63,856 nucleotides of DNA, taken from assembly GCF_001194135.2 (NCBI RefSeq), contig NC_068981.1:98436074-98499929 (forward strand), written 5' to 3'. The position numbers and the translations under genes are program-made. The notes beneath the pieces are model-generated. The model worked only from the letters and a program-made list of their open reading frames with translations, searched no databases and had not been told where the DNA came from. The DNA comes from Octopus bimaculoides. Taxonomy: Eukaryota. This document shows positions 3,500 through 58,578 of the stretch, one piece after another. The number at the start of each line of letters is the position of its first letter. Positions within the stretch are counted from its first letter, which is position 1.

Positions 3500-3655
3500 C
3501 TTTTAGATTAAAAGCTTTGTCAATGGTGAATTTTAGGCCAATATCTGACTGGTATGACACACACTGGTTAAGATTCAGAACTGGGAATGGTTGAATAGAA
3601 TGGTCAGTATCCAACTTCTTCTTACACCATTCCATCATTTCAAATTCTGTCTGAT
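3500..3655 (-). CDS. Exon 21 (last found), start of probable C2-like domain 3: (D)[51 protein letters not shown]
   Basis: Acceptor ttttcctttaatAG, donor AAG|GTATCA, 156 bp, phase 1-1; no downstream exon found in 1-3499. Confidence 0.88.
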
Positions 3656-3731
3656 CTATTAAAGGAAAATTAAAGATTGATATTTACACAGCGAAATTGA
3701 AGTTTACGCACACTCATAGACACACACACAG

Positions 3732-3781
<50 letters not shown>

Positions 3782-6700
3782 TTATCTTTTATTTTTTACT
3801 TGCTTCAGTCATTAGATTGTGGTCATGCTGGGGCATTGCCTTGAAGGGTTTAGTTGAATAAATTGACACTAATACTTATTTTTTTCTAAACCTGGTATGT
3901 ATTCTATCAGTCTCTTTTGCTGGACTGCTAAGTTGCAGTGACTTAAACAAACCAACACTGGTTGTCAGACAGTGGTAGGAGACAAAGACAAAGACACACA
4001 CACACACACACACGCACACACACACACACACGCGCACACACATACACACACACACACACACACACCAGGTTATTTTCAGTTTCCATCCACCAAATCCATC
4101 CACAAGGCTTTTGTTGGCTTGGGGCTATAGTAGAAGACACTTGCCCGTGGTGTCACATAGTGGAACTGAACCCAGAACTATGTGGTTGTTAAGCAAATCT
4201 TTTACCACACATCCACACTTGGCCTATATATGCCGAACAGCTTTTCTTTTAAACAAACATTAAAACAATACTATGTACTAGATTTGCCTTTTTTATTAAG
4301 TTTTTTAAATATTTATTTTCATATGAGTTTCTTAAAGTTTTTGTGGGGAACAGTAAAGTTTCCATATCTATCATTAATGTCTCTAGACTGCCATGGTTTT
4401 TGTCTTTTTGTTAGAGCATTTAGTGTTGGCAAATTTTGTTGCTACATCATCATCTGGCATTCAGATTACTCTGTCAGATGTAATGCTTATTTATTCACAT
4501 TATTTTGAACTAATCATGCATTATCTTGTAGCTTCGAGATTTTGCTGATGTGACAACTTATTTTGAAATGACATTGTTGGTTAGGTGCAAAAGATCAAAT
4601 CTAGTTGGTTTGAACATAAAACAGGTAGAATATTTGGGTCAGATATGGCCAGTTTTAATGCTAAAGAAAGGAAATAAGTAGAGCCATTAGGAATGGGGGT
4701 AGACATCATACTAAATTTTTGATTTCTGACTGTCAGCATTTTATTTAAAAAAACAGGGAATTTTTTTTTTTTATTAGAATATGTCACGTGTTCATTTTAG
4801 CATTGTGCTCTATTATTAGAACTGTTTCCATCTTTAATAGCCATTTTTTTTAAGGATTATTCTGGACAGTATTGATGTTTTGTTTACTACTGTAACAGAG
4901 AGCTACAGTAGTAAACACAGGGAAAATCTCTGTTAGCAACTAAACATGGGGGCTAGTTTTTTTATATACCAAGTATATTCAGGTGCTGTGAAGTGTCTTC
5001 TACAATCATCCTTGACTGAATATGCAGCTGTGAGAACAACTATTAGGTGAGTGTAACACAACTCACCAACCCAAATCACTTCGAATTGGTGAGAGTGGAT
5101 AACATCATGGTGGTTCAGATGTCTTGACACTCTGTGAAATTGGTGGATAATTTAACTGTATTTGTAGGCCCCACTCATGGTAAGTTCTAATTGGACCACC
5201 AAACTATCATGTGAACAATGATCGTTCATTGGATAAAATTTTAGTCGCACACATGTTCGAGCTATGATTGAATCGTGACTTGACATTTGTATATGGCAAA
5301 ACACAGGATAAAATCCAATGCTCTACAACTATTTTGCTGTCAAATTGTTTTCATGTTGTGACATGCAGTGTATTGTGGTTGCTCCATGTTAAGTGCAGTG
5401 ATCTAACAAGAAAATGTCATCAAGTTTACAATTTTCATGTTTCCAATCAAATTTATAGTTACATTGATCATTAGCAGCTTGATTGTATACTTACAGGTAT
5501 TTTAAAAAATTTTAATGCATTTTTATAGTATATTATTCTAGTTGTTATTATGATTGGATGTAATGTATTTTGAGTTACTTTTTAGAAGTTTTTCCATGTG
5601 TCCATCTATTCTACATTTAGTACACATTTGATTCATGTAGTAGACATTATATGTGATTAGAAAATTTTTAATAAATGCAGTAACTAGTATATTTACTGCA
5701 TTGTATTTGTGTTTGTATTGTTCTCAGACGTGGTCTATTAGTTTGCTAAAATAAATCCATTATTGTTTTGTGTCTGTATAACTGTGTAGGTTTCTTTATT
5801 TGGTGCATTGTTTGTGGATGAGAATTCAAACACTCTTCTGAGAAGCCATTTTACCACAAATATTTCATATCTGTGTGAACTTTCACTGCATTCATATAAG
5901 TACAGTCATGAAATATCTGTTATATTTTATCTGAATGTTTGGTTCTTGAAATGGAGTCATTGTATCGCTGTGAGTTTCATGTAAAATGTTTTGGTTACTG
6001 AACTGTTTTTTAGGTCTTCCTTTAAAGTCTAAACATTTTGCAGTGTGTCTATTACAAATATATAGTCCACATTCCTAGTGTGTATTACATTTTTCATGCC
6101 TTGTTATCACTTTATTTTCTATTCAGGCCACATAAAATGCTGCAAATATCGACCCTGATGGAGAATCCATGATCATTCTTTTCTTTACTTTAATAACTTA
6201 CCTTGTAGACAGTGGATGGATTCTTCAGTTGCACAAGATACAAATATTTTTTTTAGTATGTCATCTGGTATAGTGGATGATATTATTTCTTGGGTGTTTA
6301 TATATATTATTTAATATGGCTTCTATAGTTTTTGTCACTAGAACGTTAATAAACAGACATTGACAATTTGGTTAGTTTCTTCAAAGATATGTTGAGGCTC
6401 TTCAGATGAATTTAGTGGTATCTTTTAAGTATAATCCTGATACAGCATATGCTTATATAAGCAGCAAATTATTTAAGCAAAAAGATGAGGTAGCTATGAG
6501 CTGTCCATCAAGGTCTATGTTTGTAGCATTCTACATAATCACAATAAAAAAATACAGCTATGACTGTATAATATACACCAGGTATGTGGATGATAAATTC
6601 TTGCCTTAATGGGCTACTACCAACATAAAATATAAACACCAATTCAATACTGTAATCACCAGAACTCCATTATACCAACAATCTGCAGTATATCATTGAT

Positions 6701-7979
6701 ATTTCCAAATAGACATTAGTGAATATATTAACTGCTTATCATGATAGAGATGAGAGTCACTTTTTACCTGTTTGGATTCCATCAAAGAGCTGTAACCTGC
6801 AGATGAGAGTCTTAAGTGGCTCTGATAACTTAGAATGCTTCTGGAAACTTTCAAATATTCTTTCTTCTGAGATGGTTGGTTTACACTGGATAGAATGATA
6901 GTAGTTTGAAGTATAGGGTGGAGCAGGCTGTACATCCTGTAAGGTAACAGAGATTGGGAAAACTATTAGTAATGGATCAGAGGAATGCTTTAATCAAGAC
7001 CTAGAAATATAGATAAATAACAGTGAGACAAGAACTTGTAAGAGAGGATGGGAGAGATAATGAGAGAAGATGTGATAAACAGTGTGGTCTCTAGGTATTC
7101 AACTGACTATCTATATGTTATAGGTCTATTGAAGCATAATGGACCTATGAACGTTTCAAACATCTTACAACAAAATGCATATCATTTGAAAAGTTTAATA
7201 ACACCTGAAAACTTCATTTTCATATAGTTGGGAAAAATCAACTCAACAGAGATCATGCTTTTCAATGTAATACTCAACAGAAGACTTGGCCTCAACACAG
7301 TAAGCTAATGAAGTACTTGTCAATTCTTTGATACTGCTGCTGTTGTTTGAAGTGTAAACATAAGTACTTGTAGTACTTCCATTTAGCAGGTTGACTGAGA
7401 CATTTAAATAAAGTATCTTGGCCAACAGGGATCATGCAATACTAGTCACCAAATATGAATATCTATCCTCTTTATTAGTTGTTCAGTATACTCTACAGTT
7501 GATCATGCATATTCTTATATCCAAATATTACATATTTCAGTTGCTACATCAGAGTGTAATGCCCTTTCTTGACATGAGTTCCAGGTTCAGTTGGCTCTGT
7601 CTGACAGCACCTGGTGTGGTAATGGGTCCCCAGGTTTATGAATTCCCCAAAATAGGTAAATAACCTTATTGCCTTGTGAAACAAAGGCTAAGTAGTGAAC
7701 CTTATAATAAATCCAGAGTGGAGTTGTTAAGCCAGAATAGTGTTAGATTTGGCACAATCCTGCCAGTTCTTGCAGCCAAACTGACACCAGTTTACACTAT
7801 TTACATTATTTACATTTGACGGATATTTGTCCTCATTTTGTTTGTTGTTAACACGTTTTGGCTGATATACCCTCCATCAGGTGTCTTAGGGAAATTTTGA
7901 ACCTGGGTTCTCATTCCTAAGGCATTTTTCGATGTTGTTGTTGTTGTTGTTATTATTATTGTTATTGTTATTGTTGTTG

Positions 7980-8015
<36 letters not shown>

Positions 8016-9876
8016 TCACTGCTTGGAATCAAACTCAGATTCTTGGGGTTAGTAGCCTGCACTCTTAACCACAACGCCATATGCCCACGGGCAATTATGG
8101 AGTGAATTTTAGAACTTATAAATCTAATATTTTCCTATCCTTCCTTAATACCGGTTCCCATATGCTATTCATATCTGCACTCGGTTTCTTTTAGTTTTAG
8201 TATTTTCCAGTGGTGTTCTCTGTCTATTATTTTAACTTCATCCTACAGGGGGAGGTGATCTCCATTTTTCCATACATGTTCAACTATACCCGATTTATCA
8301 ATATCTGCAATGTTCTTCTACTCTTATTTTGAGGGGGCAACATGTTTTGCCTTTGTATAACTAAAAAAAAACTGTTCTATTCTACACTCCTTTGGATCAC
8401 ACCAGATAGACTGAGAGGATATTCTAGATTCTGAGTAGACCAAGATCTCTATATACCTAACCCTGGCTTGTACTCTGAATTGGTCAAGTTCTGACTGACC
8501 AGTGATGCAAACTTCAGTATCTCTTGAGACAGTTGGACTCCAGAAATAGACCATATTTCAATGGAACAGAATAATGTCAGTCAACAGTTCTAGTCAGTGT
8601 CTTGTGGAGCTATTAGTGATAATAAGACAGAAGTTAGTGTATTACTATTCCGGCATGAAGAGATACAACGGTATCTGATGACCAGTAACTATTGTGGCTA
8701 CTAACATAAAACAGCAACTACAGTACAATGGCAGTCACACATCACACCAGTGAGAGGAACCCACTTTACAACAGGGACAAACACAGACACAAATATACGC
8801 ACACATACAACAGGCTTCTTTCAGTTTCCACTTACCAAATCCACTCATAAGGCTTTGATCAGCTTTATAGAAGACACTTGCCTAAGGAGCCATGCAGTGA
8901 GACTGAATCCAGAACCATGCAGTTGTGAAACAAGCTTCTTACCATGCAGCTATGCCTGTATCTTCCTTGGCCTACACAGGCCTAATCTATCTCCACAATA
9001 GATCATAGACTTTCTTTTAAGTTAACACTACCTACTGCACTTCCTTTCACAATACTTTCCTACCCAGTATTTTTCATATGCTGTTATTGTTGTTGTTGTT
9101 ATTGTTTAACCCTAGGTTGACACTAGTCAAGCAGACCTATGATCAAAGTATCTCATCATTTTATATTGGGTTGTCAAATTCATTGCTTTTTTTTCCATTT
9201 ATTTTAATTCTTATTTTTCATTAATAATTTTAACAAATCAGTGATTACTATCAACAAAGCATTGTCAAACTAGTGGAATGTCAGTAAAAAGTTATAAACA
9301 TTAAAGGAGAATATATTATTAACTGATTTGTTAAAACTGTTGATGAAAAATAAGGATTAAAATAAATGGAAAAAAAAAAGCAAATTTATCTAGCAATATC
9401 AACAACCACAGTATTCAATGTAACCTTTTTTATATTTAGGATGACAGTGTGTGATTTAAGGAAGATTCAACTATTATTTCTAGCAAGTCAAGTGCCTCTA
9501 GGATCACTACTTTCTTGGTTGATTCAGCTACTGATTTACACCTACCTGCACTAAAGGTAAAATCCGAATTAAAAGTGACACCACAGGAACAATTGGTAGA
9601 TTGTCTAAGCTGGAAGACTTGATATTTTTAGACATGTCCAAAGACCCACTTCTTAACTTCAGCTGATAACCTCCAGAGCAGAATTTTACCTGTTTACAAA
9701 CAAAAACACAGTCAAAATGATACACCTAAGTTATATATCTAAATTATTTTTACAATAATTAAATTAGTGTTGATATATTTAATAAACAGAACATTAAAAG
9801 TTAACTAGAAATAAACAATATTACTGAATATCATTTTTATTTTCTCTGCAACTATGTTTGTTTGCTTTCTGAGTAT

Positions 9877-9956
<80 letters not shown>

Positions 9957-11149
9957 ACACACATGTATGCATGCATGTATGTATGTGTGTGCATGTTTGT
10001 AATTATGTATGTTATCAATCAGTTTCATTTCTGTATTTCTTGTCCATGTGGTGGTGGTGGTTTTGGAGGTGTTGGTGGTGGTGGAATTTATGTTGATGTT
10101 AGTTTCATTGTTGTTCACAATGATGATGATGGTGATGTAAGATGAAAGAGCAATTAAAACAACAAATTAACTCAAGAAATTAACTACATACATCATTATT
10201 ATCATTGTAAGATTCATAAAGACACATTAATGCATTGCCTAGTGTACACAGCTGGGTGGAGTTCATGTCAATAGTATACACAGTGAACAATATAAAGGTA
10301 TCTTTGGGTAAGTTATCCTTCATCTTTTGCATTATGAAACGATCTTCAGGGACAAACATGGGACAACACCATTTGCTGTCAATGGACGGGAACGTTGGCA
10401 GCAGTTTTGTTGTTAAGGGCTTTGATGGCTGAACTAGATAAGAAACAACCTGAAAGTAGAAATGTAGACATGAGTTACAAGACATATCCTTGTTACAAAA
10501 TATATTTCAGTATTAAATTTTTTGTCTGAGTTCCATCTACTTATCCAGCTTCTCCACCCACTATTCCTGGGGTTGAATCATAGAGGTAGGGTCCTCAGGC
10601 ACCTCCTCCATAGGATCTAATCAGAAGCAAATATCATTAGAGTTTCTGGCTGAATTCACAAGCATGACCAACGGATATCATACAACTATCTCATTCTTAG
10701 TCTATCCCTTGGTATGACAGACTCTCCCATCGAAGACGACGTATGAATGTTCAGCTTTTGCTGGACAATGTATACAAATGATTTGTTTATAGTGATCAAA
10801 TGTCCATGCTGCACATTAGCTCACTCTCTCCATCAAATCAACATTGTCTGAACAGGTACAAGATGTATGACATGTCAGGTGTTGAAGTGATCACAAAGCA
10901 ACATGAGATGAAGTGTTTTGCTCATGAACACAACATACCACATGGTCTAGGAATTGAAATCAGGATCTCATGATCGTGAGTGCAACACTCTAACCACTAA
11001 ACTATGTGCTCTCACTTGGTATGTATGTATTTTTATTAATATTTAGCAGAAGCAACAGAGTAACTCAAAGGCTGAGAGTTTCATACATTGGCACTTATCA
11101 AATGTATATGTTTATGTATATCTATACACACAACCACACACACACATAC

Positions 11150-13123: not shown

Positions 13124-16100
13124 TTCACTAGAAGAAATTAAGAGTAATTAGAGGTGGAGAGAGATGGGCTTTGTTGGCTCTAAAATGTCCAAGACGTTCT
13201 GTATATCATGATAGTGCCCTTATGACTCCCTCTGATACATACATACATACATACATACATACATTCACACACACACGTACATACATACATACATACATAC
13301 ACACACACATGCACACATGCATACATACATACATACATACATACATACATACGTAAGTGTGTGTGTGTTTATATATACACATATGTGTAAAGGTGGTGCC
13401 TCTCTTCATGGCTTACACTAACAACAATCTTTTAAGTACAAGATCAAAGATTTGAAGGTGAGAGAATACAATTATATTCATTCCAGTTACACAACTGGTA
13501 ATCATGTTATTGACACTGGGAAGAAGAAAGTTAAAATCAACCTCTGCAGGATTTGAACTCAGGACATAACTAAATACTGCAAAGCACTTTGACAACTGCC
13601 ATCCATCACCCTGGCTTACCTTAACAATAGAAGCATTATCAGGCAACATTCGGAGGCTATCAATATAGACACAAAAATCTTTGACATCATTTGACTTCCC
13701 CATCTTATCATCTGCCACAGAATCTGAATGATGACCCAGCCAAAGACCATCACTCATAAGTGAATTTCTTGAATCACTGAAACAGAACAGAAATCTCAAT
13801 GAATCTTAGAGAACATTTTGTTTGTGTGTAACAGAGAAAGAAATATCTTTCTTTTACTAGCTTCAATCATTGGACTGCAGCAATGCTGGGGCACCACCTT
13901 AAAGGATCTAGTTAAACAAGTTCACCTCAGTACTTACCTTTTGTTTTAAAAGCCTGATACTTATTCTGTCAGTCTCTGATGCTGAACAGCTAAGTTACAA
14001 GGACGTAAACAAACCAACACTTGTGGTCAAGTGATGGTGCAGGACAAACATGTACTAAAAGACAATCACACCCACACACACATACACACACACACACTGC
14101 CCCCCTCCACTCACACACACACATACATATACACAGGGTGCATTGGGTATATTGTCACCATTTTATATTTTTAATTCCACGCATGCACGTTGTTTGTTTT
14201 TGATTTTGTTGACTACACAGTATAGTAGAATCAGTTGGGCAACATCTGTGAGAAAAACAGCACCACCATGATGCAATTCACTCTGCCAGAAATTAGGGAA
14301 TGACATGCTGTACTGCTTGGAATTCACGCTAGAAGCTCCAATACGAACATTTCAGAGTGTTTGGGTGTAAATCTAAGGACAGTGCAATTTGAGGACATAT
14401 ACCGAGAGTCATAAAAATCAAACATCCAGTCAACATCATGGTGTTAGAAGTGGTCACTAGTCATGGCGACACTATGCCTCCATTAGTCTTTCCTCATGGC
14501 CTCAGATTCAACACGGAGGCCTACATCAAGTACCTGGAGGAGGTAGTGCTGCCCTGGGTCAAGAGGGGTGGCTGCTGGAAGACTCTATGTCTGGCAACAG
14601 GACTCTGCACCATGCAACACAAGCAGGAGAACCCAGTCATGGCTGTCAAATAATTTCTGCAACCACATCACCCCTAACATCTGGCTACCTAACTCACCAG
14701 ACTGCAACCCCCTTGATTATTATGTGTGGGGCGCAGTTGAGCAAAAGACCAACAAAACTCCTTGTAACACCAAAGATGAACTGAAGGCAAGGATTATGGC
14801 AGCATTCATCAACTTAAACAAGAAGACAGTCCAGAAGAGTTGCAGGAGATTCTGAAGTCGTCTGGAGGCTGTGGTTGAAGCCAAGGGCGATATTATTGAA
14901 TAAATTTACTCTTTCGTATTTCAAGATATTTTTATGTAATTTTGGTAAATATATCTGCTAAAACAATCTACTCACAAGGCTGCAACAATATGTGGTATTA
15001 GTTGGAAGCAGTGGCAACAAAGAAAACTGGGCTGACTGTGGAAACAAAACAGTCAGTGCCATGTACACTGAGTTGCATCTTACTATTGATCAGTCACCTG
15101 TTTTTCAGATCGAGCAGCAAGGTAAAATGGGAGAGGAAATCTGCCCCAAGGATTGGGTATGGCAGAGCAGCGACTAGAAGAACCTAGTGAAAGCATCGTC
15201 TGAGTTGTATATTCAAGGTGAGAGAAATTTTGCCATATGTGGTAATAGGTGAATGGTTGACCACTTGGATGATAGTGACCGAAGGACAAGGTTTTCTGTG
15301 TGTATATTTGGCAGCTCCTGAGTCAACTAGGAAACTCCTCTGGGAAATTTCATCTTTGATAAAAATTGCACGACTTGGTGGGATGGTACCAGAGACAGTA
15401 GCCATGCTTACTGCTCCATTCAGGCATTTCCCTGGGTGCTATATGAGCAAGGTGGTGTGCAATTCCTTGCCTTGGCGCCAAAGGTGGTATGGTAGCAATA
15501 TACCAATCCCTTATTGCGAACTTCCGCTGCCAGGTCTTCAATCATTTTTCCCATGGCACATCAAAAATCCTGGAACTGGGATGCTATGGCCGCTACAGTA
15601 ATGGAAGGAGAAGGTAACATTGGAGTGGTTATCTCCATTATTTTATCGGCTGATGTTGCCAATTGTTTAATGGTACTGATGTCACATATGGGTGTGAGGA
15701 TGGCTTCGATGTTAACAGGTAGGCAAGAAAAAAATAGTTTGAGAAAACCACTCTCTAATGAATTGCCTTCGGCAAGCTGGCACATTCTATGTAGTAGTTA
15801 CGACAGGGCTCGGTCTCCCAGCGGTTCATCATTAACCCTTTCATTACCAGCCCAGCTGAAACTGGCTCTGGCTCTAAGTACAAATGTTTTGTTTTCATAA
15901 GTTTTGAATTAAAATCTTCCACCAAACCTTAGTCACAATTTATGTTCCTAACACTAGCTGAATGATAACTAAGTTATTTTACTAAATTCTTTATTATATT
16001 TAAAATGATTGAAAGAAACACAGAGCTTCTCAAAATAAGTACAGTAATGAAAAGGTTAATGAGTTTGTGGAACTTTTTCTCCACTGACAGGGAATTCCAC

Positions 16101-18242: not shown

Positions 18243-18562
18243 NNNNNNNNNNNNNNNNNNNNNNNNNNNNNNNNNNNNNNNNNNNNNNNNNNNNNNNNNN
18301 NNNNNNNNNNNNNNNNNNNNNNNNNNNNNNNNNNNNNNNNNNNNNNNNNNNNNNNNNNNNNNNNNNNNNNNNNNNNNNNNNNNNNNNNNNNNNNNNNNNN
18401 NNNNNNNNNNNNNNNNNNNNNNNNNNNNNNNNNNNNNNNNNNNNNNNNNNNNNNNNNNNNNNNNNNNNNNNNNNNNNNNNNNNNNNNNNNNNNNNNNNNN
18501 NNNNNNNNNNNNNNNNNNNNNNNNNNNNNNNNNNNNNNNNNNNNNNNNNNNNNNNNNNNNNN

Positions 18563-20209: not shown

Positions 20210-20292
<83 letters not shown>

Positions 20293-23200
20293 CACGATGG
20301 GCTTGTTTTAGTTTCTTTCTACCAAATCCACTCACAAGGCTTTGGCCAGCCCAAGACTTTAGTAAAAGACACTTGCCCAAAGTTCCACACAATGGGACTG
20401 AACTCAGAACCATGTGGTTGAGAAGCATGCTTCTTACCACACAACCATGCTTGTGCTTTTTGTTTTTAATTCTTTAAATTCTTCCTCTGAGGAAGGGGCT
20501 ATTTTCTAGTAAAGATGCATAGTCCATCATTGGAATGTAAATCACAAAAACAATGTCACATTTTAAACCTCAGAAAAATCTTGCATATTTTTATTGTTTC
20601 ACTTTCAGATTGTATTTGTAATGTGTAAATTAGCTGACTGATTTCTCTTCCTGAAAATTCAAGCTTATCCAGACTGTCAGTCAGGCATTTACTTATAAAA
20701 TCAAGTGCACCTATTATTATTGGTATAAATGTAAATTTGTAATGTGGATATAAAAGCTGAAAATTTCAAAGCAGCTGTACATTGTTATTTTCTTTGATTT
20801 TCAAAGAAATATTCACATCAGCAGAACATCTGACCTCTATGATGATACATATATACTTTTTCTTGTCTGTTCCAAGCGACAATATCTGATCTGTTATGCT
20901 TACACTTCACAGATGTTTGAGTACATATTCAATAACAGGGGGATTTCAGGGCAGTCTTTTCTCTGGATGGCAATGTTTTTGCAACAACATTGTGTCACAT
21001 AGGGAGGTAGTATCTTGATGATATTTTGGGGCAACTGCTATGTATATATATGTGATTGTATGTGTGTGTGTTTGTGGGGGGGGGGGCAGTACTGTCTGTA
21101 TGCTTTATCTTTGCACGATAGTTGTAAACAAATTTCACAGCCATGCAAGTAGTGTCCTTCAATTCCAGTCTGCAGTGAAAACATGTCTGGGCATGGGGAA
21201 ATATTACCTTACGTGACAGTTGATGACAGGAAGGGCATTTGAACATAAAGAAAAAATCTGCCACAGCAAATTCCATTCAACCCATGCAAGCACAGAAAAT
21301 GGATGTTAAAATGATGATGATGATCGNNNNNNNNNNNNNNNNNNNNNNNNNNNNNNNNNNNNNNNNNNNNNNNNNNNNNNNNNNNNNNNNNNNNNNNNNN
21401 NNNNNNNNNNNNNNNNNNNNNNNNNNNNNNNNNNNNNNNNNNNNNNNNNNNNNNNNNNNNNNNNNNNNNNNNNNNNNNNNNNNNNNNNNNNNNNNNNNNN
21501 NNNNNNNNNNNNNNNNNNNNNNNNNNNNNNNNNNNNNNNNNNNNNNNNNNNNNNNNNNNNNNNNNNNNNNNNNNNNNNNNNNNNNNNNNNNNNNNGGAGA
21601 GGGAGAGGAGGGAGAGGGAGAGGAGGGAGAGGAGGGAGAGGAGGGAGAGGGAGAGGAGGACATATGCCCTACTTACCTGGCGTTGAGAGCAGTTTCAGTT
21701 CTTATATCTACTTTTAGAAATAATTCAGAGTTGTAACCTAAAATATCTTTAGACAAAAATACGATATATTAAAACAGTGAAAGTTGAATATAGAATTAAA
21801 GTGCAGAATACAAAATTATAGTGTAGAATAAAAAATTAGAGTTGGAATATAGAGTAAGATAAAGAATTACTGGGAAGTAAAAAAGGAACTATTGAGTGAT
21901 ATATATATATGTATATATAGAATTATAGTATTTGATAAAGAGTTATTTGAGGAAGATAGTATTGACAGGAATATAGAATTATGTAATGTAGAGTTATATG
22001 ATAAAGAAGTGTGGCTTAGAGTTTAGGGGTATTCGGCTCACAATCGTAAGGTCATGAGCTCAATTCCTGGCAACATGTTGTGTCCTTGAGCAAGGCACTT
22101 TATTTCATGTTACCCCAGTCCACTCAGCTAGCAAAAATTAGTAGTACCTGTATCTCAAAGGGCCAGCTTTGTCACATTTTATGTCATGCTGAATCTCCCT
22201 CAGACATGTGTCTGTAGAGTGCTCAGCCACTTGCAATTTAATTTCTTGAGCAAGCTGTTTCATTGATCAGATCAACTGGAACCCTTTTTGTTGTAACTGA
22301 CAGAGTGCCAGTTAATGGAGAGTAAAGAATTGTTTGGTAAGGTAGTGATGGTTAGTTTCCTGTGACAAGAGAATTAGTTGCATGATCCATTGATTATCTC
22401 TTAAACTAGGAGCCTTATAGCTACTGGACTCACATTTTATTATTATTGGTTCTCTTGGTTTTGGTGGACTTATCCTATATTCAATGGTTAATTGAATATC
22501 TGATTTTCTCTCTTTCAGCATTTTTAAATACTTTTATGATCCTGAAAGCTATGGCTTACATGCTTATAAAATTTAAAAAAAAAAAGAACAGCACAGCACC
22601 CATGACTTTTGGAAACATTTTTTCATGCTCAGACTTCTTGACCATAGTATCCAGACTGTTGCTATAGTAACGAAGCTAAAGCATGCAGAGTGAAGCCACT
22701 TGGCACAGATTGACCTTGTACTCTGCCATGCATGTGCACTAAGTTTTAACATTCTAGCTCACTTCCGCTGTTTATAGCAGTGCTTGGAAGGAAGGTACAT
22801 AGCGTGTGATCATCACATTAACTATGACAATGAATTTCTCTCATGGTATCTACTGTAATAAAGTTTGTTCTAACAGAACATTCACATTTAAGTGGTAATA
22901 AATATTATCTCTCATAACCAAATACTGTAAAATATTCCATCTCATATTCCACTGATTCTACCAGTCTATTGCCCTACCAACAGCCTGAGACCACTTTTAG
23001 TTCTATGAGACAAAACTACCCATTTTAAAATGCTCGCATTTAAATTGAAACTTTCCTTCATAATTTTATTAAAAAGCAAAAAAGAATGTTATAGTAACGG
23101 AGCATTGTTGTGAAACAAAGTTGAAGAAAAATGCTCATCAAATTTGCTTACATTTTGAAGACGTTTCTGTGCAGTTGATAGATTCTCTGACATGTTGCTG

Positions 23201-26200
23201 CATGAAGATATCAGGAATGGCTCCAGAATGTAAAGCAGCTACAGTGTTTCTTTGGGTCAGCTCAGTCAGTGGAATAAAGGCCCAACCAAGGGTTGCTGTA
23301 AAAAGAAGAGGAAAATGATATTTTTGTTCTCAATGGGTTGTTACATACAAAATTAAACATTATTTCTTTTTCTAAGTAGACAGTAGACAGACGTGAACAG
23401 TACAAGATAGAACCAGTCTCAGCTACTAGACAGAGTTTCATAGAGCTAGTACACAGGACTAGATAGATCTTGTAGACTGAACAAAATAGAAGTAATGCAC
23501 TGAAATGTATAGAGCTGAAAGACTGAATTTCATAGAGCTGGTAGACTGAACTGAACTGTGACGGTGCATGACCTAATGTTAGGTCATGGTTTTAATTGCT
23601 GCACTGGGTAGGTGCATTGTGTTCTTTAGCAAAAAAGCTCATTGTATGTTACTCCAGTTCAATCAATGGTAAATGAGTAACTCTGCAATGAACTGGCAGC
23701 CCATTTAGGAAGAATATTGCGATCTCAGTCACTTATATACAAAGGAAACCAGGCAACTGGCCCTATGAATCCTAGCACTTGAGACAGTAATGTCCACAAG
23801 ACTTACTTTTTACTTCAATACACTGAACAATGTAGAGACAGTCAACTGAATTTGATAAAGCCAGTTCAATGAACTAGATAGTAATAACTATGTATGTATA
23901 TAAACAAACTTACATTTGTTTTTTAGAAGCATTGAATGTGTATCATACAATACTGACAAGAAAGTGATATTTCAAATGCAGTATCACTATTGAAGCAGCA
24001 GAAAAATTGGGTATTATTACTCTTACAAGGTGGAAAAAGTTGTCAACAAATAGTCATGGGAGTTGAACCCACATCCCCCAATACACTGCTTAAGTGCTTT
24101 TCCATTAAGTTAAACTGCCCGCTGAGAACATTTCTGCTGATTTTAAGCGCTAAATAGACAACTTTGTGAAATGTAACAACCACATGTGCATATAAACAAA
24201 CTTACATTTGTTTTTAGAAGCCTTGAATGTATATTGTACAACAGCATTAATAGACTGAACTATGCAGATAGAGCTGGGAGAGTGAACTAGTTCAAGTTAG
24301 TATGCTGAACTGGACAGAACTAATAGACTGAGCTCTTTTTCAAATCACTGCAAACAAAGATGTATTTCATTATGCCATGTCAAACCATGCATCAATTCAA
24401 CATCTACACACTGTATTTATCTGGTCAATATCAACAGATTTTATTACTCCAGTCATCAACACATTCAGGTCCTGTAAATGAGGAGTTCAGCCAGCACATT
24501 GGTCTGGGGCACGGAAAGACCTGTGAATATCTAACAGGAATTTATCAAAGAAAGAAAGGAAGGAAGGAAGGAAGGAAGGAAGGAACATCACGGGTAAAAG
24601 CAATCTTGTTCTACCTTGAAAATTTTCTCTTGTAGGCCCAAAATACAGTGTATCAATCCATTCAACATCTACACCACTGTATTTATCTCAAGAGTTCTCA
24701 ACCCTTTTTTATCTATGGATCCCTTTGGTTACAATTTTATTCTGGTAGACCCCCATAACCATTCAATGTTTCAAAGCTAGTTTTATCAAAGCTTCTTTCC
24801 AAATTGTTATAGTTTTCACACATTAACCTGTATAGGTTGAATTATGTAAAATGTTAGAGAAAAAAACCTTGCTGTTTTTTGCTATACATACCAATACATA
24901 CATCTAGAGCAAAATTTTTTCAGGAGCCCTTAAAATACAATTGTGGATCTCTGATTTACTATTTTGTTGTGTGGACCTCCAAAAGTCTTCTATGGATCTT
25001 CAAGGCCATATGGATCCAAGATGAGAACCACTGACCTATCTGATAAACATCTGCACTCTGTATCTATCAGGTTGAGTAAAAAGTAAGCAACGTTTTGAAC
25101 CATGAAGAATTTGTACTAGATTTTTGCAGAGTTTTGAATTTTTTTTAAACATTTTTTTTGCAATTGTTTGATAATACAGACATAGACTTGCCCAAATGCA
25201 TCAATAAATTAACATTGATATTTTTTTCACTGTTGTTACAAACATCTGAAATGGAACTGCCATTGCACGATATTCAAGCAATTTTGCTATTCAACTTCAA
25301 AAAAGGACATAAAACAGCTGAAACTACTCACGATATCAATGAAACATTTGGTGAGGAAATGACCAGTGAGTGGTCAGCTTGAAAATGGTTTAAACGATTT
25401 TGCAGTGGAGACCTGAGCCTTAAAGATTGTGAACGTAGTAGACGCCCATCTGTCATCAATAATGGTTAATTAAAGACCGTCCATTGAGAAAGGTCTACGT
25501 AAAACCACTTGAGAACTGGCAAAAGAACTTCAAGTTAGCCAGAAAACTGCCTGCAATCATTTGCATGTGATCAGAAAATCAAAAAGGCTCAACAAATGAG
25601 TACCACATGATTTGAATGAAAATCAGAAAATGCACAGATATGAAATTTGCTTGTCGCTTCTTCTCCGTAACCAGACAGTTCCATTTTTTGACCGTATTGT
25701 AACTTGTGATGAAAAGTGGATTCTGTACAATAATAAAAAAATGTTCTTCCGAGCTCTTCAAAAAGAAGGTTATGGTGACTGTTTGGTGGTGTACTGCTGG
25801 ACTCATCCACTATAACATCTTAAAACTCAGAAAAACCATTACTGCAGATACATATTGCCATGAAATTGCCAAGATGAATGGAAAACTGCTACTCCTTCAT
25901 CCCAGACTGGTCAACAGAATAGGGCCAATCATTCTTCATGACAATGCTCGACCACATGTTTCCCTAATGATGCTCCAGAAGTTGAGGGAACTTGGCTACT
26001 AAGTTCTTCCCCACCCAGCTTATTCCCTAGACCTTTCTCCTACTGACTATCACTTTTTCAAGAACATTGATGGTTTCCTGCAAGAGGAGTTCAAAAATCA
26101 AACAGATACTAAAAGTGCATTCAAAGAGTTCATCAGCTCCAGAACTCCAGATTTTTATGTTACCGGAATAAACAAACTTGTAACTCGGCAAAAATGTTTT

Positions 26201-27189
26201 GATTGTAATGGTACTTACTCTGATGTGGTTGGCGTTAGGAAGGGCATCCAGCTGTAGAAACTCTGCCAAATTAGATTGGAGCCTGGTGTTGCCATCCAGT
26301 TTCACCAGTCCTCAATCAAATCGTCCAACCCATGCTAGCATGGAAAGCGGACGTTAAACGATGATGATGATGATGATGATTGTTGAAATATATTGTGATG
26401 ACTTTCATATTTCAAAACAGTTGCTCACTTTTTACTCATCTTGATATATAGTCAGAGTGTGAGGTGTGAGATGTTTTAGCGTAGACATTTTGGCATTGCC
26501 TATTTAGAACCACCAATTCAACACTGACATATTTGCCATCAGATGTTCTAATGGTTCTCATTCTCCCATTTTCTCTCTCTCTCCCCTGCCCCTCCTCTCT
26601 TTTACCCCTCTTCTCTCTCTCACGCCCCACCTCTCTCCAGCCCCTCCTCTCTCTCTCTCACCCCTCCTCTCTCTCATCCCTCTTCTCTCTCACCCCTCCT
26701 CTCTCTCTCTCTCTCGCCCCTCCTTTCTCTCTTGCCTCTCCTCAGTCTCTCACTCTCCCTCTCTCTCTCTCCTCCCCTTTCTCTTTCTTACTCAATCTGT
26801 ATGTGTAAATTTCTTGTTTACTTTAATTGTCAAAACATACTGTCACCAAAACTAGCTGAATGTCCAGTCAGCTATGCCAAATCAACAGCATCCAAACAGC
26901 TGTATCTAGCTGTCACATTCTGATATAATCAACATCTAAATTTACATTATTTAGTTTTTCCTTCTTTGCAGTAGGGATTAAAATAATTATCGCACAAAAA
27001 AAATTTTCATTATCATTGGTGCAGGAGTGGCTGTGTGATATGAAGTTTGCTTCCCAATCACATAGTTCCCAATCACATAGTTCAATCCCAATGCATGGCA
27101 CCTTGGGCAATTGTCTTCTACTATAGCTTCAAACCAACCAAAGACTTGTGAGTGGATTTGGTGGACAGAAACTGAATGAAGCCATGTGT

Positions 27190-27228
<39 letters not shown>

Positions 27229-56770: not shown

Positions 56771-56827
<57 letters not shown>

Positions 56828-58578
56828 TCTGTGTGTGTGTGTGTGTGTTTGTTTTTGTGTGTCTGTGTTTGTCCCCCACCATCGTTTGACAACCGATGTT
56901 GGTGTATTTATGTCCCCGTAACTACCGGTTCGGCAAAAGAGACCGATAGAATAAGTACTAGGCTTACAACGAATTAGTACTGGGGTCGATTTGTTTGATT
57001 AAAGGCAGTGCTCCAGCATGACCGCAGTCAAATGACTGAAACAAATAAAAGAATAAAAAGAAAAGAATAGAATATGAACATATTTATATATATAGCCTGG
57101 ATCACCTGGATTGGGCAGATTGTCTGGTGCTGAGTCAGCTCCCCTGGCCACAGTATTTGCTCCATTCCCCTCATACTCTTGCCATAGGGATTGAAGAAAT
57201 TCAGGCAAATATCTCAGCACTCCATGCATGCAATGAACCTGGTTAACAGAATGGGACAGGTACAAACTGTATATTCAAAGCTGTTCACCAATAGATAGGT
57301 TGGTGCATTAATCACAAAACCAAGCAGTTATTTCCCAAGGTATTTTGTCTGACTCTTTAACAATTCTGCCAAACCACTACCAATAGCATCAATATAATCT
57401 GAATTACTACATAAATCAGTATTGGAGAAATACAGAATAAAAGTGTGTTACCTGAGAGTATCATGAGTCACCAGTGACCCATAACCAGCCTCAATGATAG
57501 CATTTGCCAGCCCTTGACTTAATAATGATTTCATTTCTAGCAACATCTGCTGAGAGCACTCCTGCAAAAGATATGCATCATCATCATCATCATCAAACTT
57601 TTAACATGATTCTATATTAGTATGGGTTAGATAGGCTTGCCATACAAAGACCTGCCCACCACAACAGTCAATACAATAAATTATTGGCCAGTTCATATTT
57701 TTCACTTGCTATAAAGGATAAAAGACCCCCTTCAGTCATGAATGACCATGTGATTGCCTAGAAAGTTACCCTCCGAGGTCTAAGCCAGGGCAAGGTTGTT
57801 TATGGAAGACCAGCAGTCAGCCATGCATACCAGCTCCCCCTCCCCAAGCTACTGATGTCTTTCCCAAAGGCTGATACATCTTGGCATCAGTGACGTCACA
57901 ACTCATTTCTACAACTGAGTGAATAGGTGCAACATGAAATAAAGTGTCTTGCTCAATAACAATACATAGTCTGATCCAGGAATTGAACTTACTAGTGCAT
58001 GGTAGTGAGCCCAACACTCTAACCACTGAGCCATGCACCTTCACTTGCTTTAGCTTCTTTATATTTCATCATAAAAATAAAACTGTTTTCATGCTACACG
58101 ATCTAACTTCAAACAAAGGAAGGCTAGATGGATTTAGAAGGGAAGGTTATAATTTTGAATTTTAATCCAAGGAAGAGAGGCATGCTCATAATACTTACAT
58201 GCATTTTCATTCCTGTTAGTGATGAGGAAGGACCTAAATCCAAAAATCTTCAGCAAAATGACAGAGGTAAATTGTAATTATTTCTTTTGATGAGACATGA
58301 CCAAATTTGACAGAACTTCTGTTTGGATCAACTCCAGTTTATTACTGGAACTAATTTTATTATTCTCATAACTTTGGAAAACAAAGTCACACAAGAGGTT
58401 CAGGGAGGAAGGAACATAGAATATTTACCTTGCGTTGAAGTCCATGTGAAGGATAAGACAGGTACTTTAATGTAAACTGAGGCCCCATACAGGAAACCAC
58501 AGCTTGACTTCTCTCAGGGCTGAGGTTGATTTCTGAGTCTATGATATGAGCAAACTTTTGACAGATATTTTCTTGGAT
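3500..58578 (-). CDS. Multi-exon gene (21 exons found, partial at both ends): uncharacterised protein of more than 1100 aa with a TBC/Rab-GAP-like domain followed by C2-like domains
   Basis: Manual splicing: every exon below has AG/GT boundaries. Phases chain 0-0-2-1-1-1-2-0-1-0-0-0-2-0-1-1-2-0-0-0-1-1 with no stop codon. Domain calls come from motif resemblance only. Confidence 0.85.
4930..6400 (-). mobile_element. Decayed Penelope-like retroelement (RT C-terminal half plus GIY-YIG tail)
   Basis: Frameshifted motifs [15 protein letters not shown] (SLFTNVP), [13 protein letters not shown] (MGSP), [10 protein letters not shown] (RYVDD) and DDCRRH...YIKKLAP. Confidence 0.65.
6406..6620 (+). 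mobile_element. Penelope-like RT fragment, inverted relative to the neighbouring copy
   Basis: [22 protein letters not shown]...IYTRYVDD in ORF 6406-6609. Confidence 0.7.
6768..6936 (-). CDS. Exon 20: [56 protein letters not shown]
   Basis: Acceptor tctctgttaccttacAG, donor CAG|GTAAAA, 169 bp, phase 0-1. Confidence 0.88.
7935..8560 (-). mobile_element. Penelope-like GIY-YIG 3-prime fragment followed by a tRNA-like segment and an (AAT)n tail
   Basis: [16 protein letters not shown] ... [37 protein letters not shown]; A/B-box-like segment at 8014-8085. Confidence 0.65.
9546..9689 (-). CDS. Exon 19: [48 protein letters not shown]
   Basis: Acceptor tttttgtttgtaaacAG, donor CAG|GTAGGT, 144 bp, phase 0-0. 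Confidence 0.9.
10192..10449 (-). CDS. Exon 18: [12 protein letters not shown]...[36 protein letters not shown]
   Basis: Acceptor catttctactttcAG, donor GAT|GTATGT, 258 bp, phase 0-0. Confidence 0.9.
11353..11466. repeat. Perfect 114-bp palindrome abutting an N-gap
   Basis: 57-bp arms, no spacer, centre 11409/11410. Confidence 0.95.
11527..11935. mobile_element. Foldback/MITE-like element with imperfect inverted arms of about 200 bp
   Basis: aatcaaaataagcaacaggatatc... is mirrored by ...gatatcctgttgcctattttgatt. Confidence 0.8.
13620..13776 (-). CDS. Exon 17, start of C2-like domain 2: (S)[14 protein letters not shown]...[20 protein letters not shown]
   Basis: Acceptor ttctgttctgtttcAG, donor AAG|GTAAGC, 157 bp, phase 2-0. 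Confidence 0.9.
14133..14960 (+). mobile_element. Internally deleted maT (DD37D) Tc1/mariner element
   Basis: QQDSAPCNT...[13 protein letters not shown] with 37 residues between the 2nd and 3rd Asp; left end tacacagggtgc; right TIR not seen. Confidence 0.8.
14982..16901 (-). mobile_element. Gypsy/Ty3 LTR retrotransposon relic: 5-prime LTR (16663-16901), PBS, gag, protease; pol and 3-prime LTR missing
   Basis: LTR TGTAG...CTACA; PBS TGGTGTCA; gag [13 protein letters not shown]...[34 protein letters not shown]; protease FLVDSGA and PILGADFL. Confidence 0.85.
15890..16048. mobile_element. Short non-autonomous repeat inserted in the Gypsy gag
   Basis: AT-rich block interrupting gag; a similar sequence occurs at about 49110-49257. 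Confidence 0.55.
19222..20100 (+). mobile_element. Internally deleted mariner element with both TIRs and TA TSD, inserted in a SINE
   Basis: ta|caaggtggtatcaaaaagttccc ... ggaacccttttataccacctcg|ta; fragments [13 protein letters not shown] and [20 protein letters not shown]. Confidence 0.88.
21677..21737 (-). CDS. Exon 16: (C)[19 protein letters not shown]
   Basis: Acceptor gatattttAG, donor CAG|GTAAGT, 61 bp, phase 1-2; bridges exons 15 and 17 exactly. Confidence 0.85.
22630..22830 (+). mobile_element. Solo 5-prime arm of the mariner family that forms the 55493-56378 element
   Basis: Shares gtatccagactgttgctatagtaacgaagctaaag...ctagctcacttcc with that element. Confidence 0.7.
23152..23295 (-). 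CDS. Exon 15: (S)[47 protein letters not shown]
   Basis: Acceptor ttcctcttctttttacAG, donor AAT|GTAAGC, 144 bp, phase 1-1; LGWAFIPL is a typical C2 strand. Confidence 0.9.
24689..25033. mobile_element. hAT-type MITE
   Basis: Ends caagagttctcaacc / gatgagaaccactg resemble CAGTGGTTCTCAA TIRs; flanks atttatct / acctatct resemble a decayed 8-bp TSD. Confidence 0.55.
25070..26220 (+). mobile_element. Near full-length decayed mariner (DD34D) transposase pseudogene
   Basis: [63 protein letters not shown]; multiple stops and frameshifts. Confidence 0.9.
26225..26385 (+). mobile_element. RTE 3-prime-tail repeat ending in (GAT)n
   Basis: ggttggcgttaggaagggcatccagc...gcatggaaagcggacgttaaacgatgatg; copies also at about 1540-1700, 2060-2255, 32020-32190, 32448-32600, 43160-43380, 44376-44750 and 45830-46010. 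Confidence 0.8.
27535..27808 (-). CDS. Exon 14, C2-like domain 1: [23 protein letters not shown]...[16 protein letters not shown]
   Basis: Acceptor tttttttataacAG, donor T|GTGAGT, 274 bp, phase 0-1. Confidence 0.88.
29630..30096. mobile_element. 467-bp MITE with 24-bp TIRs and perfect 8-bp TSD (AATTGTGG), inserted in a SINE
   Basis: TIRs ggtggaattctagtttaggcaccc / reverse complement ggtggaattctggtttaagcaccc (22/24); TSD at 29622-29629 and 30097-30104. Confidence 0.92.
31118..31358 (-). CDS. Exon 13: (Q)[21 protein letters not shown]...[28 protein letters not shown]
   Basis: Acceptor ttttcttttcAG, donor AAT|GTAATT, 241 bp, phase 2-0. Confidence 0.85.
31480..31895 (-). mobile_element. Penelope-like (probably Naiad-type) RT fragment
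   Basis: [12 protein letters not shown]...[19 protein letters not shown]...FGL*R/DNVLAI...[16 protein letters not shown]...PYRKPN...YIKTASSH. Confidence 0.75.
33800..33918 (-). CDS. Exon 12: [39 protein letters not shown]
   Basis: Acceptor ctttctcttctgttgtAG, donor TCA|GTAATA, 119 bp, phase 0-2. Confidence 0.85.
34950..35270 (+). mobile_element. Representative of a second tRNA-headed SINE family
   Basis: gtggctcagtggttagagtg head with central ttgagcaagacactttatttcac; related copies at about 22010-22310, 34530-34880 (-) and 57720-58040 (-). Confidence 0.7.
35619..35780 (-). CDS. Exon 11, TBC C-terminal helices: [54 protein letters not shown]
   Basis: Acceptor tttcactctatttcAG, donor CAG|GTAAGA, 162 bp, phase 0-0; VWDQLFL matches the TBC IWD.FF motif. 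Confidence 0.92.
36300..37000 (-). mobile_element. Possible highly decayed LINE apurinic endonuclease segment
   Basis: One frame with several stops: [10 protein letters not shown]..., SEDRYYLLI..., later DF/LAHH (GDFNAHH-like). Confidence 0.3.
37650..38040. repeat. Compound (GAT/GAC/AAT)n trinucleotide tract
   Basis: Direct reading; similar tracts at 18563-18660, 38620-38740 and 53500-53890, plus many (CA)n, (TA)n and (GA)n arrays. Confidence 0.95.
38133..38291 (-). CDS. Exon 10: [53 protein letters not shown]
   Basis: Acceptor ctaattcttcAG, donor GAG|GTACAG, 159 bp, phase 0-0. Confidence 0.85.
39167..39345 (-). CDS. Exon 9: (G)[59 protein letters not shown]
   Basis: Acceptor aattgcAG, donor AAG|GTGGGT, 179 bp, phase 1-0; [12 protein letters not shown] resembles the TBC L..DP.L..HL helix. 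Confidence 0.9.
41683..41860 (-). CDS. Exon 8: [59 protein letters not shown]
   Basis: Acceptor attcctttacAG, donor AAG|GTAATA, 178 bp, phase 0-1. Confidence 0.9.
42040..42300 (+). mobile_element. Possible LINE (CR1/L2/Jockey-type) 3-prime remnant
   Basis: [16 protein letters not shown] and [12 protein letters not shown] resemble the end of LINE ORF2. Confidence 0.3.
42817..42940 (-). CDS. Exon 7: (G)[41 protein letters not shown]
   Basis: Acceptor tttttctcttAG, donor GAG|GTAAGT, 124 bp, phase 2-0. Confidence 0.9.
43883..44890. mobile_element. AT-rich foldback element (inverted arms of about 135 bp) carrying an RTE 3-prime insertion at about 44376-44750
   Basis: ataagaattgaaataaaagctcaaattaggcaatc... 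is mirrored at ...gattgccaaatttgagcttttattttaattcttat. Confidence 0.7.
46769..46985 (-). CDS. Exon 6, start of TBC-like domain: (D)TRKSV...[33 protein letters not shown]
   Basis: Acceptor ttttatttcctAG, donor GG|GTAAGT, 217 bp, phase 1-2; LPxxLRxxIW resembles the TBC N-terminal motif. Confidence 0.9.
47333..48262 (+). mobile_element. Four head-to-tail copies of a tRNA-derived SINE of about 210 bp
   Basis: Repeated gagctggcagaat..ttagcatg...gagttcaaattcc...gactttgcctttcatcc units; other copies at about 12680-12860 and 29200-29630. Confidence 0.85.
48516..48618 (-). CDS. Exon 5: ([14 protein letters not shown])[20 protein letters not shown]; acceptor either at 48618 (phase 0) or at 48575 (phase 1)
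   Basis: Donor CAG|GTAAGC, phase 1, joins exon 6 in frame. Only the 48575 acceptor is directly in phase with exon 4. Confidence 0.6.
49837..50100 (+). mobile_element. Penelope-like (Naiad-type) C-terminal fragment with a 24-bp inverted duplication at its 5-prime junction
   Basis: [40 protein letters not shown]...[13 protein letters not shown] at 49878-50078. Confidence 0.75.
50150..52157 (-). mobile_element. RTE-clade LINE, ORF2 pseudogene (RT plus internal zinc finger); 5-prime end runs into an N-gap, 3-prime end truncated
   Basis: [64 protein letters not shown]. Confidence 0.93.
53134..53271 (-). CDS. Exon 4: (E)[45 protein letters not shown]
   Basis: Strong acceptor ttttccttcctcAG, donor ATG|GTAACC, 138 bp, phase 1-1. 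Confidence 0.65.
55170..55405 (+). mobile_element. Possible LINE C-terminal zinc-finger remnant
   Basis: [15 protein letters not shown] ... [17 protein letters not shown] (C2H2-like). Confidence 0.4.
55493..56378. mobile_element. Palindromic mariner derivative built from two 5-prime ends
   Basis: Arms of about 250-280 bp starting gtctgatcaataagtatccg; both contain the transposase start MTxKV; the minus strand carries a longer N-terminal transposase fragment. Confidence 0.8.
56611..57062 (+). mobile_element. Representative of the most abundant tRNA-derived SINE (about 400 bp, internal (GT)n, tail gaaacaaataaaaga)
   Basis: Other copies at about 3250-3410, 3780-4220, 8740-8960, 13850-14130, 17250-17620, 18677-19095, 20100-20450, 27020-27430, 41370-41600, 54380-54800 and 60630-60835. 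Confidence 0.85.
57106..57266 (-). CDS. Exon 3: (S)[53 protein letters not shown]
   Basis: Acceptor ctttgaatatacAG gives the in-frame phase-2 start, donor CAG|GTGATC, 161 bp, phase 2-1; acceptor choice is uncertain. Confidence 0.65.
57452..57561 (-). CDS. Exon 2: [36 protein letters not shown]
   Basis: Acceptor ttttgcAG, donor CAG|GTAACA, 110 bp, phase 0-2; the only open frame. Confidence 0.75.
58429..58578 (-). CDS. Exon 1 (first found): [50 protein letters not shown]
   Basis: Acceptor ctttctgtctctacAG, donor AAG|GTAAAT, 150 bp, phase 0-0. Confidence 0.75.

Follow-up and report, generated by a model that had tools for sequence, protein, structure and literature searches.

The window, by which we mean the whole stretch of DNA analysed here (63,856 bases of the Octopus bimaculoides genome, contig NC_068981.1), is AT-rich and repeat-rich eukaryotic DNA with nine runs of N. 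Its minus strand carries, from 58578 to 3500, the multi-exon coding chain under study, which is a genuine octopus protein-coding gene with 19 of its exons in the window. The encoded protein is predicted to join an N-terminal TBC block to a C-terminal region of C2-type domains that is shared with the ciliated-cell protein CCDC17.

The exon chain and its orthologues

The 19 exons, each bounded by an AG acceptor and a GT donor, keep phase across their junctions and add up to 3,094 nt, or 1,031 codons, without a stop; a stop-free frame of this length is expected by chance at ∼1e-32 at the base composition of the window. The translation is identical to residues 39–1069 of P0001, a MetaClust entry of 1,069 residues. 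In exon-by-exon tblastn, the Octopus sinensis protein (P0002, LOC115211485, 1,324 residues) matches 19 of 19 exons and the Argonauta hians protein (P0004, 1,203 residues) matches 15 at 44–75% identity; the identity of the octopus protein to that of O. sinensis is 95%. An earlier reading made from the letters alone, referred to here as the sequence-only reading, had proposed 21 minus-strand exons and more than 1,120 residues. The canonical, in-phase and stop-free chain from 58578 to 3500 stands, and the support within the window comes to 19 exons and 1,031 residues. Many exons are indeed absent from the list of open reading frames, as that reading had noted, with a count of 9 out of 19 rather than eight for the default list (at least 60 residues).

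The exon set was obtained by finding orthologues with a 953-residue draft and mapping these back by tblastn. The draft retrieved four octopod proteins, P0001, P0002, P0003 (Octopus vulgaris, 1,196 residues) and P0004, all of them unnamed and without Pfam domains. A first, orthologue-free rebuild had combined phase rules and repeat masking with the scoring of splice sites and of codons, the latter by a log-odds table derived from the clearest exons. This chainer recovered most true exons with exact boundaries and missed or under-scored two (38291–38133 and 33918–33800); its false exons, for example 47126–46816 (extended upstream), 46578–46460, 16283–16115, 15183–15098 and 6264–6202, were dropped after orthologue mapping. 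No homologue of the 378 residues of hand-picked exon pieces was found in a word-indexed search.

The domains map onto the exons in order (exons are numbered after P0001, with exon 1 outside the window). Exons 5–11 encode the TBC fold, exons 12–16 and 16–18 the first and second C2-like domains, and exons 19–20 the helical linker that follows.

The N-terminal block is predicted to adopt a TBC fold

Residues 151–554 of P0001, exactly as the window encodes them, were modelled by AlphaFold2 from a 47-sequence alignment. The model is all-helical, with a predicted local distance difference test score (pLDDT) of 88.5 and a predicted template modelling score (pTM) of 0.88. When it was searched against the PDB with Foldseek, the top 13 matches were all TBC/RabGAP domains (probability 0.99–1.0, target-normalised template modelling (TM) score 0.42–0.69), those with names being TBC1D4, TBC1D1, Gyp1p, TBC1D15, TBC1D22A/B, TBC1D23 and TBC1D7, and the fold scores fall sharply after the 13th. 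The model thus places a TBC fold in the N-terminal block. The sequence-only reading had called this fold from short motifs, and the structure prediction and fold search, with TBC/RabGAP matches only, bear it out. Two of its motifs are present as written on the minus strand, LPxxLRxxIW at 46851–46822 and VWDxLF as VWDQLF at 35741–35724; L..D.EL..HL as written has no match, the real stretch (39240–39205) having its leucine one residue further from the aspartate.

Sequence similarity to known TBC domains is faint. Pfam RabGAP-TBC (PF00566) scores 13.2–22.9 bits in the proteins with listed scores, below the gathering score of 25.2 and over the last third of the profile only; at E ≤ 0.01 it is found in 15 of the 22 full-length family members (best E 1.3e-5). 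Direct Pfam searches with the octopod draft and profiles gave no significant match, nor did PDB sequence searches with the draft, the four-octopod profile, the 47- and 48-sequence profiles or the motif A–C sub-profile. The best PDB sequence match of the TBC block was TBC1D23, non-significant at E 0.19.

Active TBC RabGAPs carry an arginine finger, IxxDxxR, and a glutamine finger, YxQG, as seen in the Gyp1p–Rab33 structure. The 47-sequence alignment retains the RxxxW motif (motif A, within 46851–46822), with R53 in 46 of 46 and W57 in 39 of 46 sequences. In the IxxDxxR region the family consensus is SPIxGLIENAV, with no conserved arginine. At the YxQG position, in the loop before model helix 154–164, it is Y(E/Q)P(Y/F), and 33 of the 47 sequences have proline where the glutamine would be. 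The helix-loop-helix pattern of the model fits the register assigned to the catalytic motifs. Because both the arginine and the glutamine finger appear replaced, the TBC domain is most likely a non-catalytic module for binding a small GTPase and not a GTPase-activating protein (GAP), a conclusion in which we have moderate confidence. The label 'Rab-GAP-like' given by the sequence-only reading therefore holds for the fold, and the activity is improbable with both catalytic fingers apparently missing.

Three further matches or candidates were set aside. A phycocyanin match of the motif A–C sub-profile (E 0.0075) covers 41 residues of a helix and is regarded as chance. TBC1D32/Bromi was rejected: its divergent TBC domain lies at the C-terminus, the protein is not known to have C2 domains, and the Xenopus gene would bear its name. 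The fold matches that come next after the TBC domains, 9qzf_E and 9qzf_v from the Tetrahymena centriole proximal A–C linker (probability 0.66–0.75, TM score ∼0.33), are too weak to interpret.

The C-terminal region contains three predicted C2-type domains

For the C-terminal region, residues 435–1203 of Argonauta P0004 were modelled from a 48-sequence alignment, as every other octopod sequence has pieces missing. The model (pLDDT 83.8, pTM 0.69) contains three β-sandwiches, a helical linker between the second and the third, and a helical tail. Matched over the whole region, it gave 112 PDB fold matches at E ≤ 1e-3, of which those listed are C2-domain proteins: ferlins, extended synaptotagmin, DOCK, copine, PI3K, cPLA2, synaptotagmins and Munc13. 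The best match was 9nw3_3A from the Tetrahymena ciliary-tip central pair (E 2.6e-9). On the strength of the model, the three β-sandwiches are predicted to be C2-type (PI3K-C2-like) domains. C2 domains of the PI3K type are usually calcium-independent.

The sequence-only reading had announced three C2-like domains, in part from the motif LGWAxIPL, which is present as LGWAFIPL at 23290–23267 on the minus strand. The three β-sandwiches match C2 proteins as it proposed; the window itself encodes two complete domains and the first strand of the third. By sequence, no curated Pfam C2-type model matches the octopod proteins and no relationship of the C2 region to PDB chains is detectable. The Pfam model PI3K_C2 is found at E ≤ 0.01 in 6 of the 22 full-length family members (best E 7.7e-7), and in a CCDC17-type protein of the ichthyosporean Chromosphaera it scores 20.1 bits, under the cut-off of 26.4. 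Another good fold match of the C2 region is 9ijj_k, an 859-residue chain of the mouse sperm central apparatus (E 3.9e-7).

The gene appears to be an old paralogue of CCDC17

The C2 region has a named relative, which the sequence-only reading had missed. A profile of 11 TBC-containing members aligned in hhalign with one of six CCDC17-type proteins at a probability of 100% (E 3.1e-57, 664 columns). The match spans the first C2-like domain to the C-terminus, and there is none in the TBC block. The octopod-only profile likewise finds CCDC17 of a gecko, an annelid and a chytrid fungus at ∼4e-12 to 6e-11 among 1.84 billion proteins. Proteins with the C-terminal region only also occur in a choanoflagellate and an ichthyosporean.

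Owenia has both gene types, P0016 (TBC + C2) and P0137 (CCDC17), and so does Chromosphaera, with P0095 (TBC + C2) and P0101 (CCDC17-type). P0095 lay outside the training of the C-region model and matches C2-like domains 2 and 3 at 3e-19 and 1e-20. Since each of the two species has both types, the octopus gene would be a paralogue of CCDC17 and not its orthologue. Judged from this co-occurrence rather than from a tree, the TBC–C2 and CCDC17 lines are likely to be old paralogues.

An unnamed family from an ichthyosporean to vertebrates

A trimmed profile of the four octopod proteins, searched against the 1.84 billion representative proteins, returned 411 relatives at E ≤ 1e-3, of which 56 reach E ≤ 1e-30; a word-indexed search with a 22-sequence alignment gave six proteins only. 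Local domain mapping revealed a common layout of a variable N-terminus, a conserved block (profile 15–385), a variable linker and a conserved C-terminal region (640–1140). All four modules are present in 36 long proteins, and 14 more lack the first C2-like domain only. Full-length relatives that were looked up come from Biomphalaria, Mytilus, Owenia, Tubulanus, Acanthaster and Diadema and, among vertebrates, from Xenopus tropicalis (LOC100490302), Lissotriton, Lepisosteus, Polypterus and Narcine. The ichthyosporean protein P0095 has the TBC block and C2-like domains 2 and 3.

The sequence-only reading could name no characterised protein with a TBC-like domain followed by three C2-like domains, and the searches agree. 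Every orthologue that could be looked up is 'uncharacterized' or 'hypothetical', none of these has a Pfam domain above threshold, the six orthologue identifiers are absent from the searchable literature, and no TBC protein with C2 domains is described in the literature searched. As judged from these sequences, the proteins form a conserved, unnamed family that extends from an ichthyosporean to anamniote vertebrates, and the TBC–C2 fusion would predate animals. There is apparently no named mammalian member, a statement drawn from the 'LOC' names of the vertebrate genes and not exhaustive. Amniotes, insects and nematodes may have lost the gene. The term 'undescribed system' used by the sequence-only reading was too strong for one gene of a widespread family whose existence is already catalogued as a hypothetical protein in several genomes; the family itself appears undescribed.

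Relatives of ∼500 residues that match the first block only are unnamed crustacean proteins, and their assignment to TBC1D19 proved wrong. One relative, P0010 (1,658 residues), repeats a ∼33-residue stretch of the TBC block (profile 132–165) ∼17 times in tandem, either an odd internal expansion or an artefact of assembly or annotation.

A conserved exon is probably hidden in an assembly gap

All runs of N within the gene are intronic (Table 1), and orthologues read straight through the junctions of the gapped introns 7, 11, 15 and 16, whose flanking exons are in phase. At intron 3, the O. sinensis protein has 34 extra residues (126–159) between exons 3 and 4. This segment is conserved across phyla and is encoded nowhere in the read sequence of the window. 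A conserved exon is probably hidden in the intron-3 gap, most likely in the run of 757 N, with the run of 10 N as the alternative; it would span ∼103 nt and probably encodes EKPHELLQQFRRETALQFKEYLYKFCQNEELRIM or a close variant. At exon 3, the donor at 57452 scores better than that at 57472 and adds the in-frame residues VTHDTLR, which are present in O. sinensis just before the 34-residue segment. Both the P0001 and the O. vulgaris model omit the segment by using the weaker donor at 57472. Most simply, a real exon lies in one of the two gaps, and the weaker donor allowed the gene model to bridge it. Alternative splicing is a possible cause of the skip, with the same skip in the O. vulgaris model in its favour. 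For annotation, the case illustrates that an assembly gap can conceal a conserved exon and shift a gene model to a weaker splice donor.

The gene extends past both ends of the window. Coding sequence is missing there for two parts of the O. sinensis orthologue: residues 1–36, which form the first coding exon, and the final ∼226 residues, which comprise most of C2-like domain 3 and the tail. Exon 20 ends with one spare base, so the gene continues past the low-coordinate end of the window. In O. vulgaris the orthologous gene (the P0003 locus, GCA_951406725.2) is ∼105.6 kb, far longer than the window, and its upstream neighbour encodes a SPRING1-domain protein.

In exon 16, 13 encoded residues are absent from the O. 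sinensis and O. vulgaris models; Argonauta and the family consensus (WVxH) retain them. The difference is probably one of annotation or of an alternative acceptor.

Table 1. Exons, runs of N and mobile or repetitive elements in the window (exon numbering after P0001)
Feature	Position	Strand	Remarks
Exon 2	58429..58578	-	Conserved N-terminal region of unknown fold; AG/GT, phase 0; 100% tblastn match to P0001
Exon 3	57472..57561	-	Donor at 57472 is that of the database model; stronger donor at 57452
Exon 4	48516..48618	-	N-terminal region
Exon 5	46769..46985	-	Start of TBC fold; RxxxW motif, R invariant in the family
Exon 6	42817..42940	-	TBC fold; site of the IxxDxxR arginine-finger motif, no conserved R in the family
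Exon 7	41683..41860	-	TBC fold; site of the YxQG glutamine-finger motif, family consensus P
Exon 8	39167..39345	-	TBC fold; holds the motif stretch 39240-39205
Exon 9	38133..38291	-	TBC fold; insertion loop and FIRQWIGE (W invariant)
Exon 10	35619..35780	-	TBC fold; LWVWDQLF (W, D, Q nearly invariant); source of the sub-threshold Pfam RabGAP-TBC match
Exon 11	33800..33918	-	Final helices of TBC block; donor CA/GTAATA
Exon 12	31118..31358	-	Disordered linker and start of C2-like domain 1
Exon 13	27535..27808	-	C2-like domain 1
Exon 14	23152..23295	-	C2-like domain 1; LGWAFIPL (G, W nearly invariant)
Exon 15	21677..21746	-	End of C2-like domain 1
Exon 16	13620..13776	-	Start of C2-like domain 2; matches the family/CCDC17 motif FDLYID..RFLPDN
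Exon 17	10192..10449	-	C2-like domain 2
Exon 18	9546..9689	-	End of C2-like domain 2
Exon 19	6768..6936	-	Conserved PAPxY motif and helical linker
Exon 20	3500..3655	-	Helical linker and first strand of C2-like domain 3; one spare base at end
Runs of N	52158-52914; 54109-54118		Intron 3; 757 N and 10 N
Runs of N	39634-40329; 41200-41209		Intron 7
Run of N	32611-33095		Intron 11
Runs of N	18243-18562; 21327-21595		Intron 15
Run of N	11185-11352		Intron 16
Interspersed repeat family, copies	17187-17739; 18668-19142; 54371-54799; 56563-57094; 3706-4221; 27023-27445; 20250-20455; others	both	
Mariner-type transposase remnant	25612-26002	+	Intronic; 25706-26002 matches Pfam Transposase_1, E 3e-15
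Mariner-like by eye	14438-14855; 19439-20022	+	Intronic; no Pfam match
Retrotransposon fragment	50219-51955	-	Intron 3; RVT_1 match, E 1e-5, and PHD/C1-like zinc finger
Partial second copy of retrotransposon fragment	59079-59767		Upstream of exon 2; found by self-BLAST
Cluster of open reading frames	61322-63069	+	Presumed intron 1; 131, 93, 56, 61 and 75 residues
Low-complexity tracts	37541-39186	both	Introns 8 and 9, either side of exon 9; poly-Ser/His/Ile/Met open reading frames of up to 170 residues in several frames

Mobile elements and repeats in the introns

By self-comparison, ∼16 kb of the window was masked as interspersed repeats, and several of its long open reading frames are transposon remnants with reverse transcriptase, PHD-like finger or mariner transposase sequences (Table 1). 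Much of the intronic sequence of the gene consists of one interspersed repeat family, of which the window has up to 13 copies; motifs such as GLNLEPCGW and SKLLTTQPL recur in its translated copies, and (CA)n or (TA)n microsatellites often flank it. The cluster of open reading frames in the presumed intron 1 may be another decayed mobile element: three of the frames were tested without a Pfam match, and a CQHHILDRVL stretch recalls hAT-type transposases. The low-complexity tracts on either side of exon 9 are non-coding trinucleotide repeat expansions.

Proposed function and alternatives

CCDC17 is used as a marker of ciliated cells (PMC13096173), and the DNAAF9 interactome includes it among ciliary tip proteins (PMC12700831). 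The account that best explains the observations as a whole, and that we hold to be on balance probable, is an unnamed family of CCDC17 paralogues with a probably non-catalytic TBC domain and three C2-type domains, perhaps acting at cilia. Under this account the TBC domain would bind a small GTPase without switching it off, as in TBC1D7 or TBC1D23, and the three C2-type domains would most likely anchor the protein to a membrane or microtubule surface. Speculatively, the protein may act at motile cilia or basal bodies and tether a carrier or compartment marked by a GTPase to the axoneme or the ciliary membrane; the best fold match of the C2 region, probably a tandem-C2 protein bound to ciliary-tip microtubules, would fit this setting.

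Several points weigh against this account. The register of the catalytic motifs comes from our own alignment, PDB profile searches of the motif A–C region reached no TBC chain, and the octopus protein has glutamines beside the expected position (YNQSYQP). The C2 fold matches are not assigned to individual β-sandwiches among the three, and the match to 9nw3 is one of fold only, with TM scores of 0.16–0.28 and no sequence match; chain 3A is probably C2D1, an identity taken from the paper and not from the entry. A ciliary role is plausible by analogy, with CCDC17 paralogy as its single source, and the searches returned no record of expression, localisation or biochemistry for the family. Crustaceans have no motile cilia outside sperm. 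They keep the TBC-only version, which suggests that the TBC block has at least one role independent of motile cilia.

The strongest competitor, to which we give tentative credence, keeps the same architecture and assigns it a general, non-ciliary role as a cytoplasmic trafficking or cytoskeletal scaffold, the TBC-like block binding a Rab and the C2 domains binding endomembranes. TBC and C2 domains are typical of vesicle traffic, the fold matches include ferlins, extended synaptotagmin, copine, DOCK and PI3K, and the retention of the TBC block alone in crustaceans would suit such a scaffold, as would the lack of direct ciliary evidence for the octopus family in the literature searched. However, the C2 region has no other named relative than CCDC17, a protein tied to multiciliated cells, and CCDC17-type proteins occur in flagellated lineages such as the chytrid and the choanoflagellate. 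A more specific ciliary proposal is one that we consider somewhat doubtful: a so-far unrecognised component of the motile cilium or basal body, in which a dead TBC domain holds a Rab or Arl GTPase and three CCDC17-type C2 domains anchor the protein at the ciliary membrane or on microtubules of the axoneme or the tip. Such a component would be as old as Holozoa; animals with free-swimming sperm and with ciliated epithelia or larvae would have kept it, and amniotes would have lost it.

It is unlikely that the TBC domain is an active Rab GAP with non-canonical catalytic residues, brought to membranes by the C2 domains. The TBC fold is clear, the RxxxW motif and the WDQLF region are strongly conserved, and octopus Q148 and Q151 lie near the expected glutamine position; but these glutamines are not conserved, the 47 members show no conserved arginine in the IxxDxxR region and a proline consensus at the YxQG position, and the Pfam RabGAP-TBC match stays below threshold and within the last third of the domain. 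Finally, an annotation artefact that fuses neighbouring TBC-like and CCDC17-like genes is very improbable, for even though TBC-only proteins exist in crustaceans, C2-only proteins (CCDC17) are widespread and the octopus chain is known here from genomic DNA and not RNA, the TBC + C2 order recurs in the 36 long four-module proteins, among them independent annotations from molluscs, an annelid, a nemertean, echinoderms and vertebrates, P0005 (1,389 residues, both halves) lies on contigs that were assembled from sequencing runs and that, at only 4.5 kb, are as long as one transcript, and all 18 exon junctions in the window hold phase without a stop.

For the favoured account of a CCDC17-paralogue family, the significance lies in the combination. 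We found no prior description of a TBC domain fused to a CCDC17-type triple-C2 region, in a family without a name, a Pfam model or a literature, and the apparent absence of a named mammalian counterpart would explain why it was overlooked. The octopus gene is a well-founded single-gene candidate with a testable ciliary hypothesis. If that hypothesis is true, the Xenopus orthologue LOC100490302 offers an easy experimental entry point; if the more specific reading as a motile-cilium component is true, the family would be a missing piece of the biology of the ciliary tip or cargo delivery that mammalian models could never show.

Comparison with known TBC and C2 proteins

Like TBC/RabGAP proteins in general, the octopus family keeps the RxxxW and W...F...WD motifs. 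TBC1D7 and TBC1D23 lack the arginine and glutamine fingers; the family shares with them the all-helical TBC fold and also appears to be without both fingers. It belongs to none of the named TBC1D subfamilies, as its Pfam scores are sub-threshold and its similarity to solved TBC domains is non-significant.

The Tetrahymena C2D1 and vertebrate Ccdc33 proteins resemble the octopus protein in having several C2 domains per chain. C2D1 is located on the tubulin surface of ciliary-tip microtubules, and the C2 domains of Ccdc33 are required for its function at the ciliary tip. They differ in having no TBC domain, and their likeness to the octopus family is at the level of the fold only, with low TM scores and no sequence relationship.

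CCDC17 shares with the octopus protein a region of ∼700 residues from C2-like domain 1 to the C-terminus, comprising three β-sandwiches, the helical linker and the tail, as well as the motifs FDLYID..RFLPDN, GG.QLRL and PAP.Y. In CCDC17-type proteins the TBC block is replaced by a Cys/His motif (C..C...H....C) and a long, mostly unmatched N-terminal part. CCDC17 has itself barely been characterised beyond its use as an expression marker and its entry in an interactome. By this comparison it carries the same three predicted C2-type domains, which offers a handle on the domain structure and function of a protein widely used to mark multiciliated cells.

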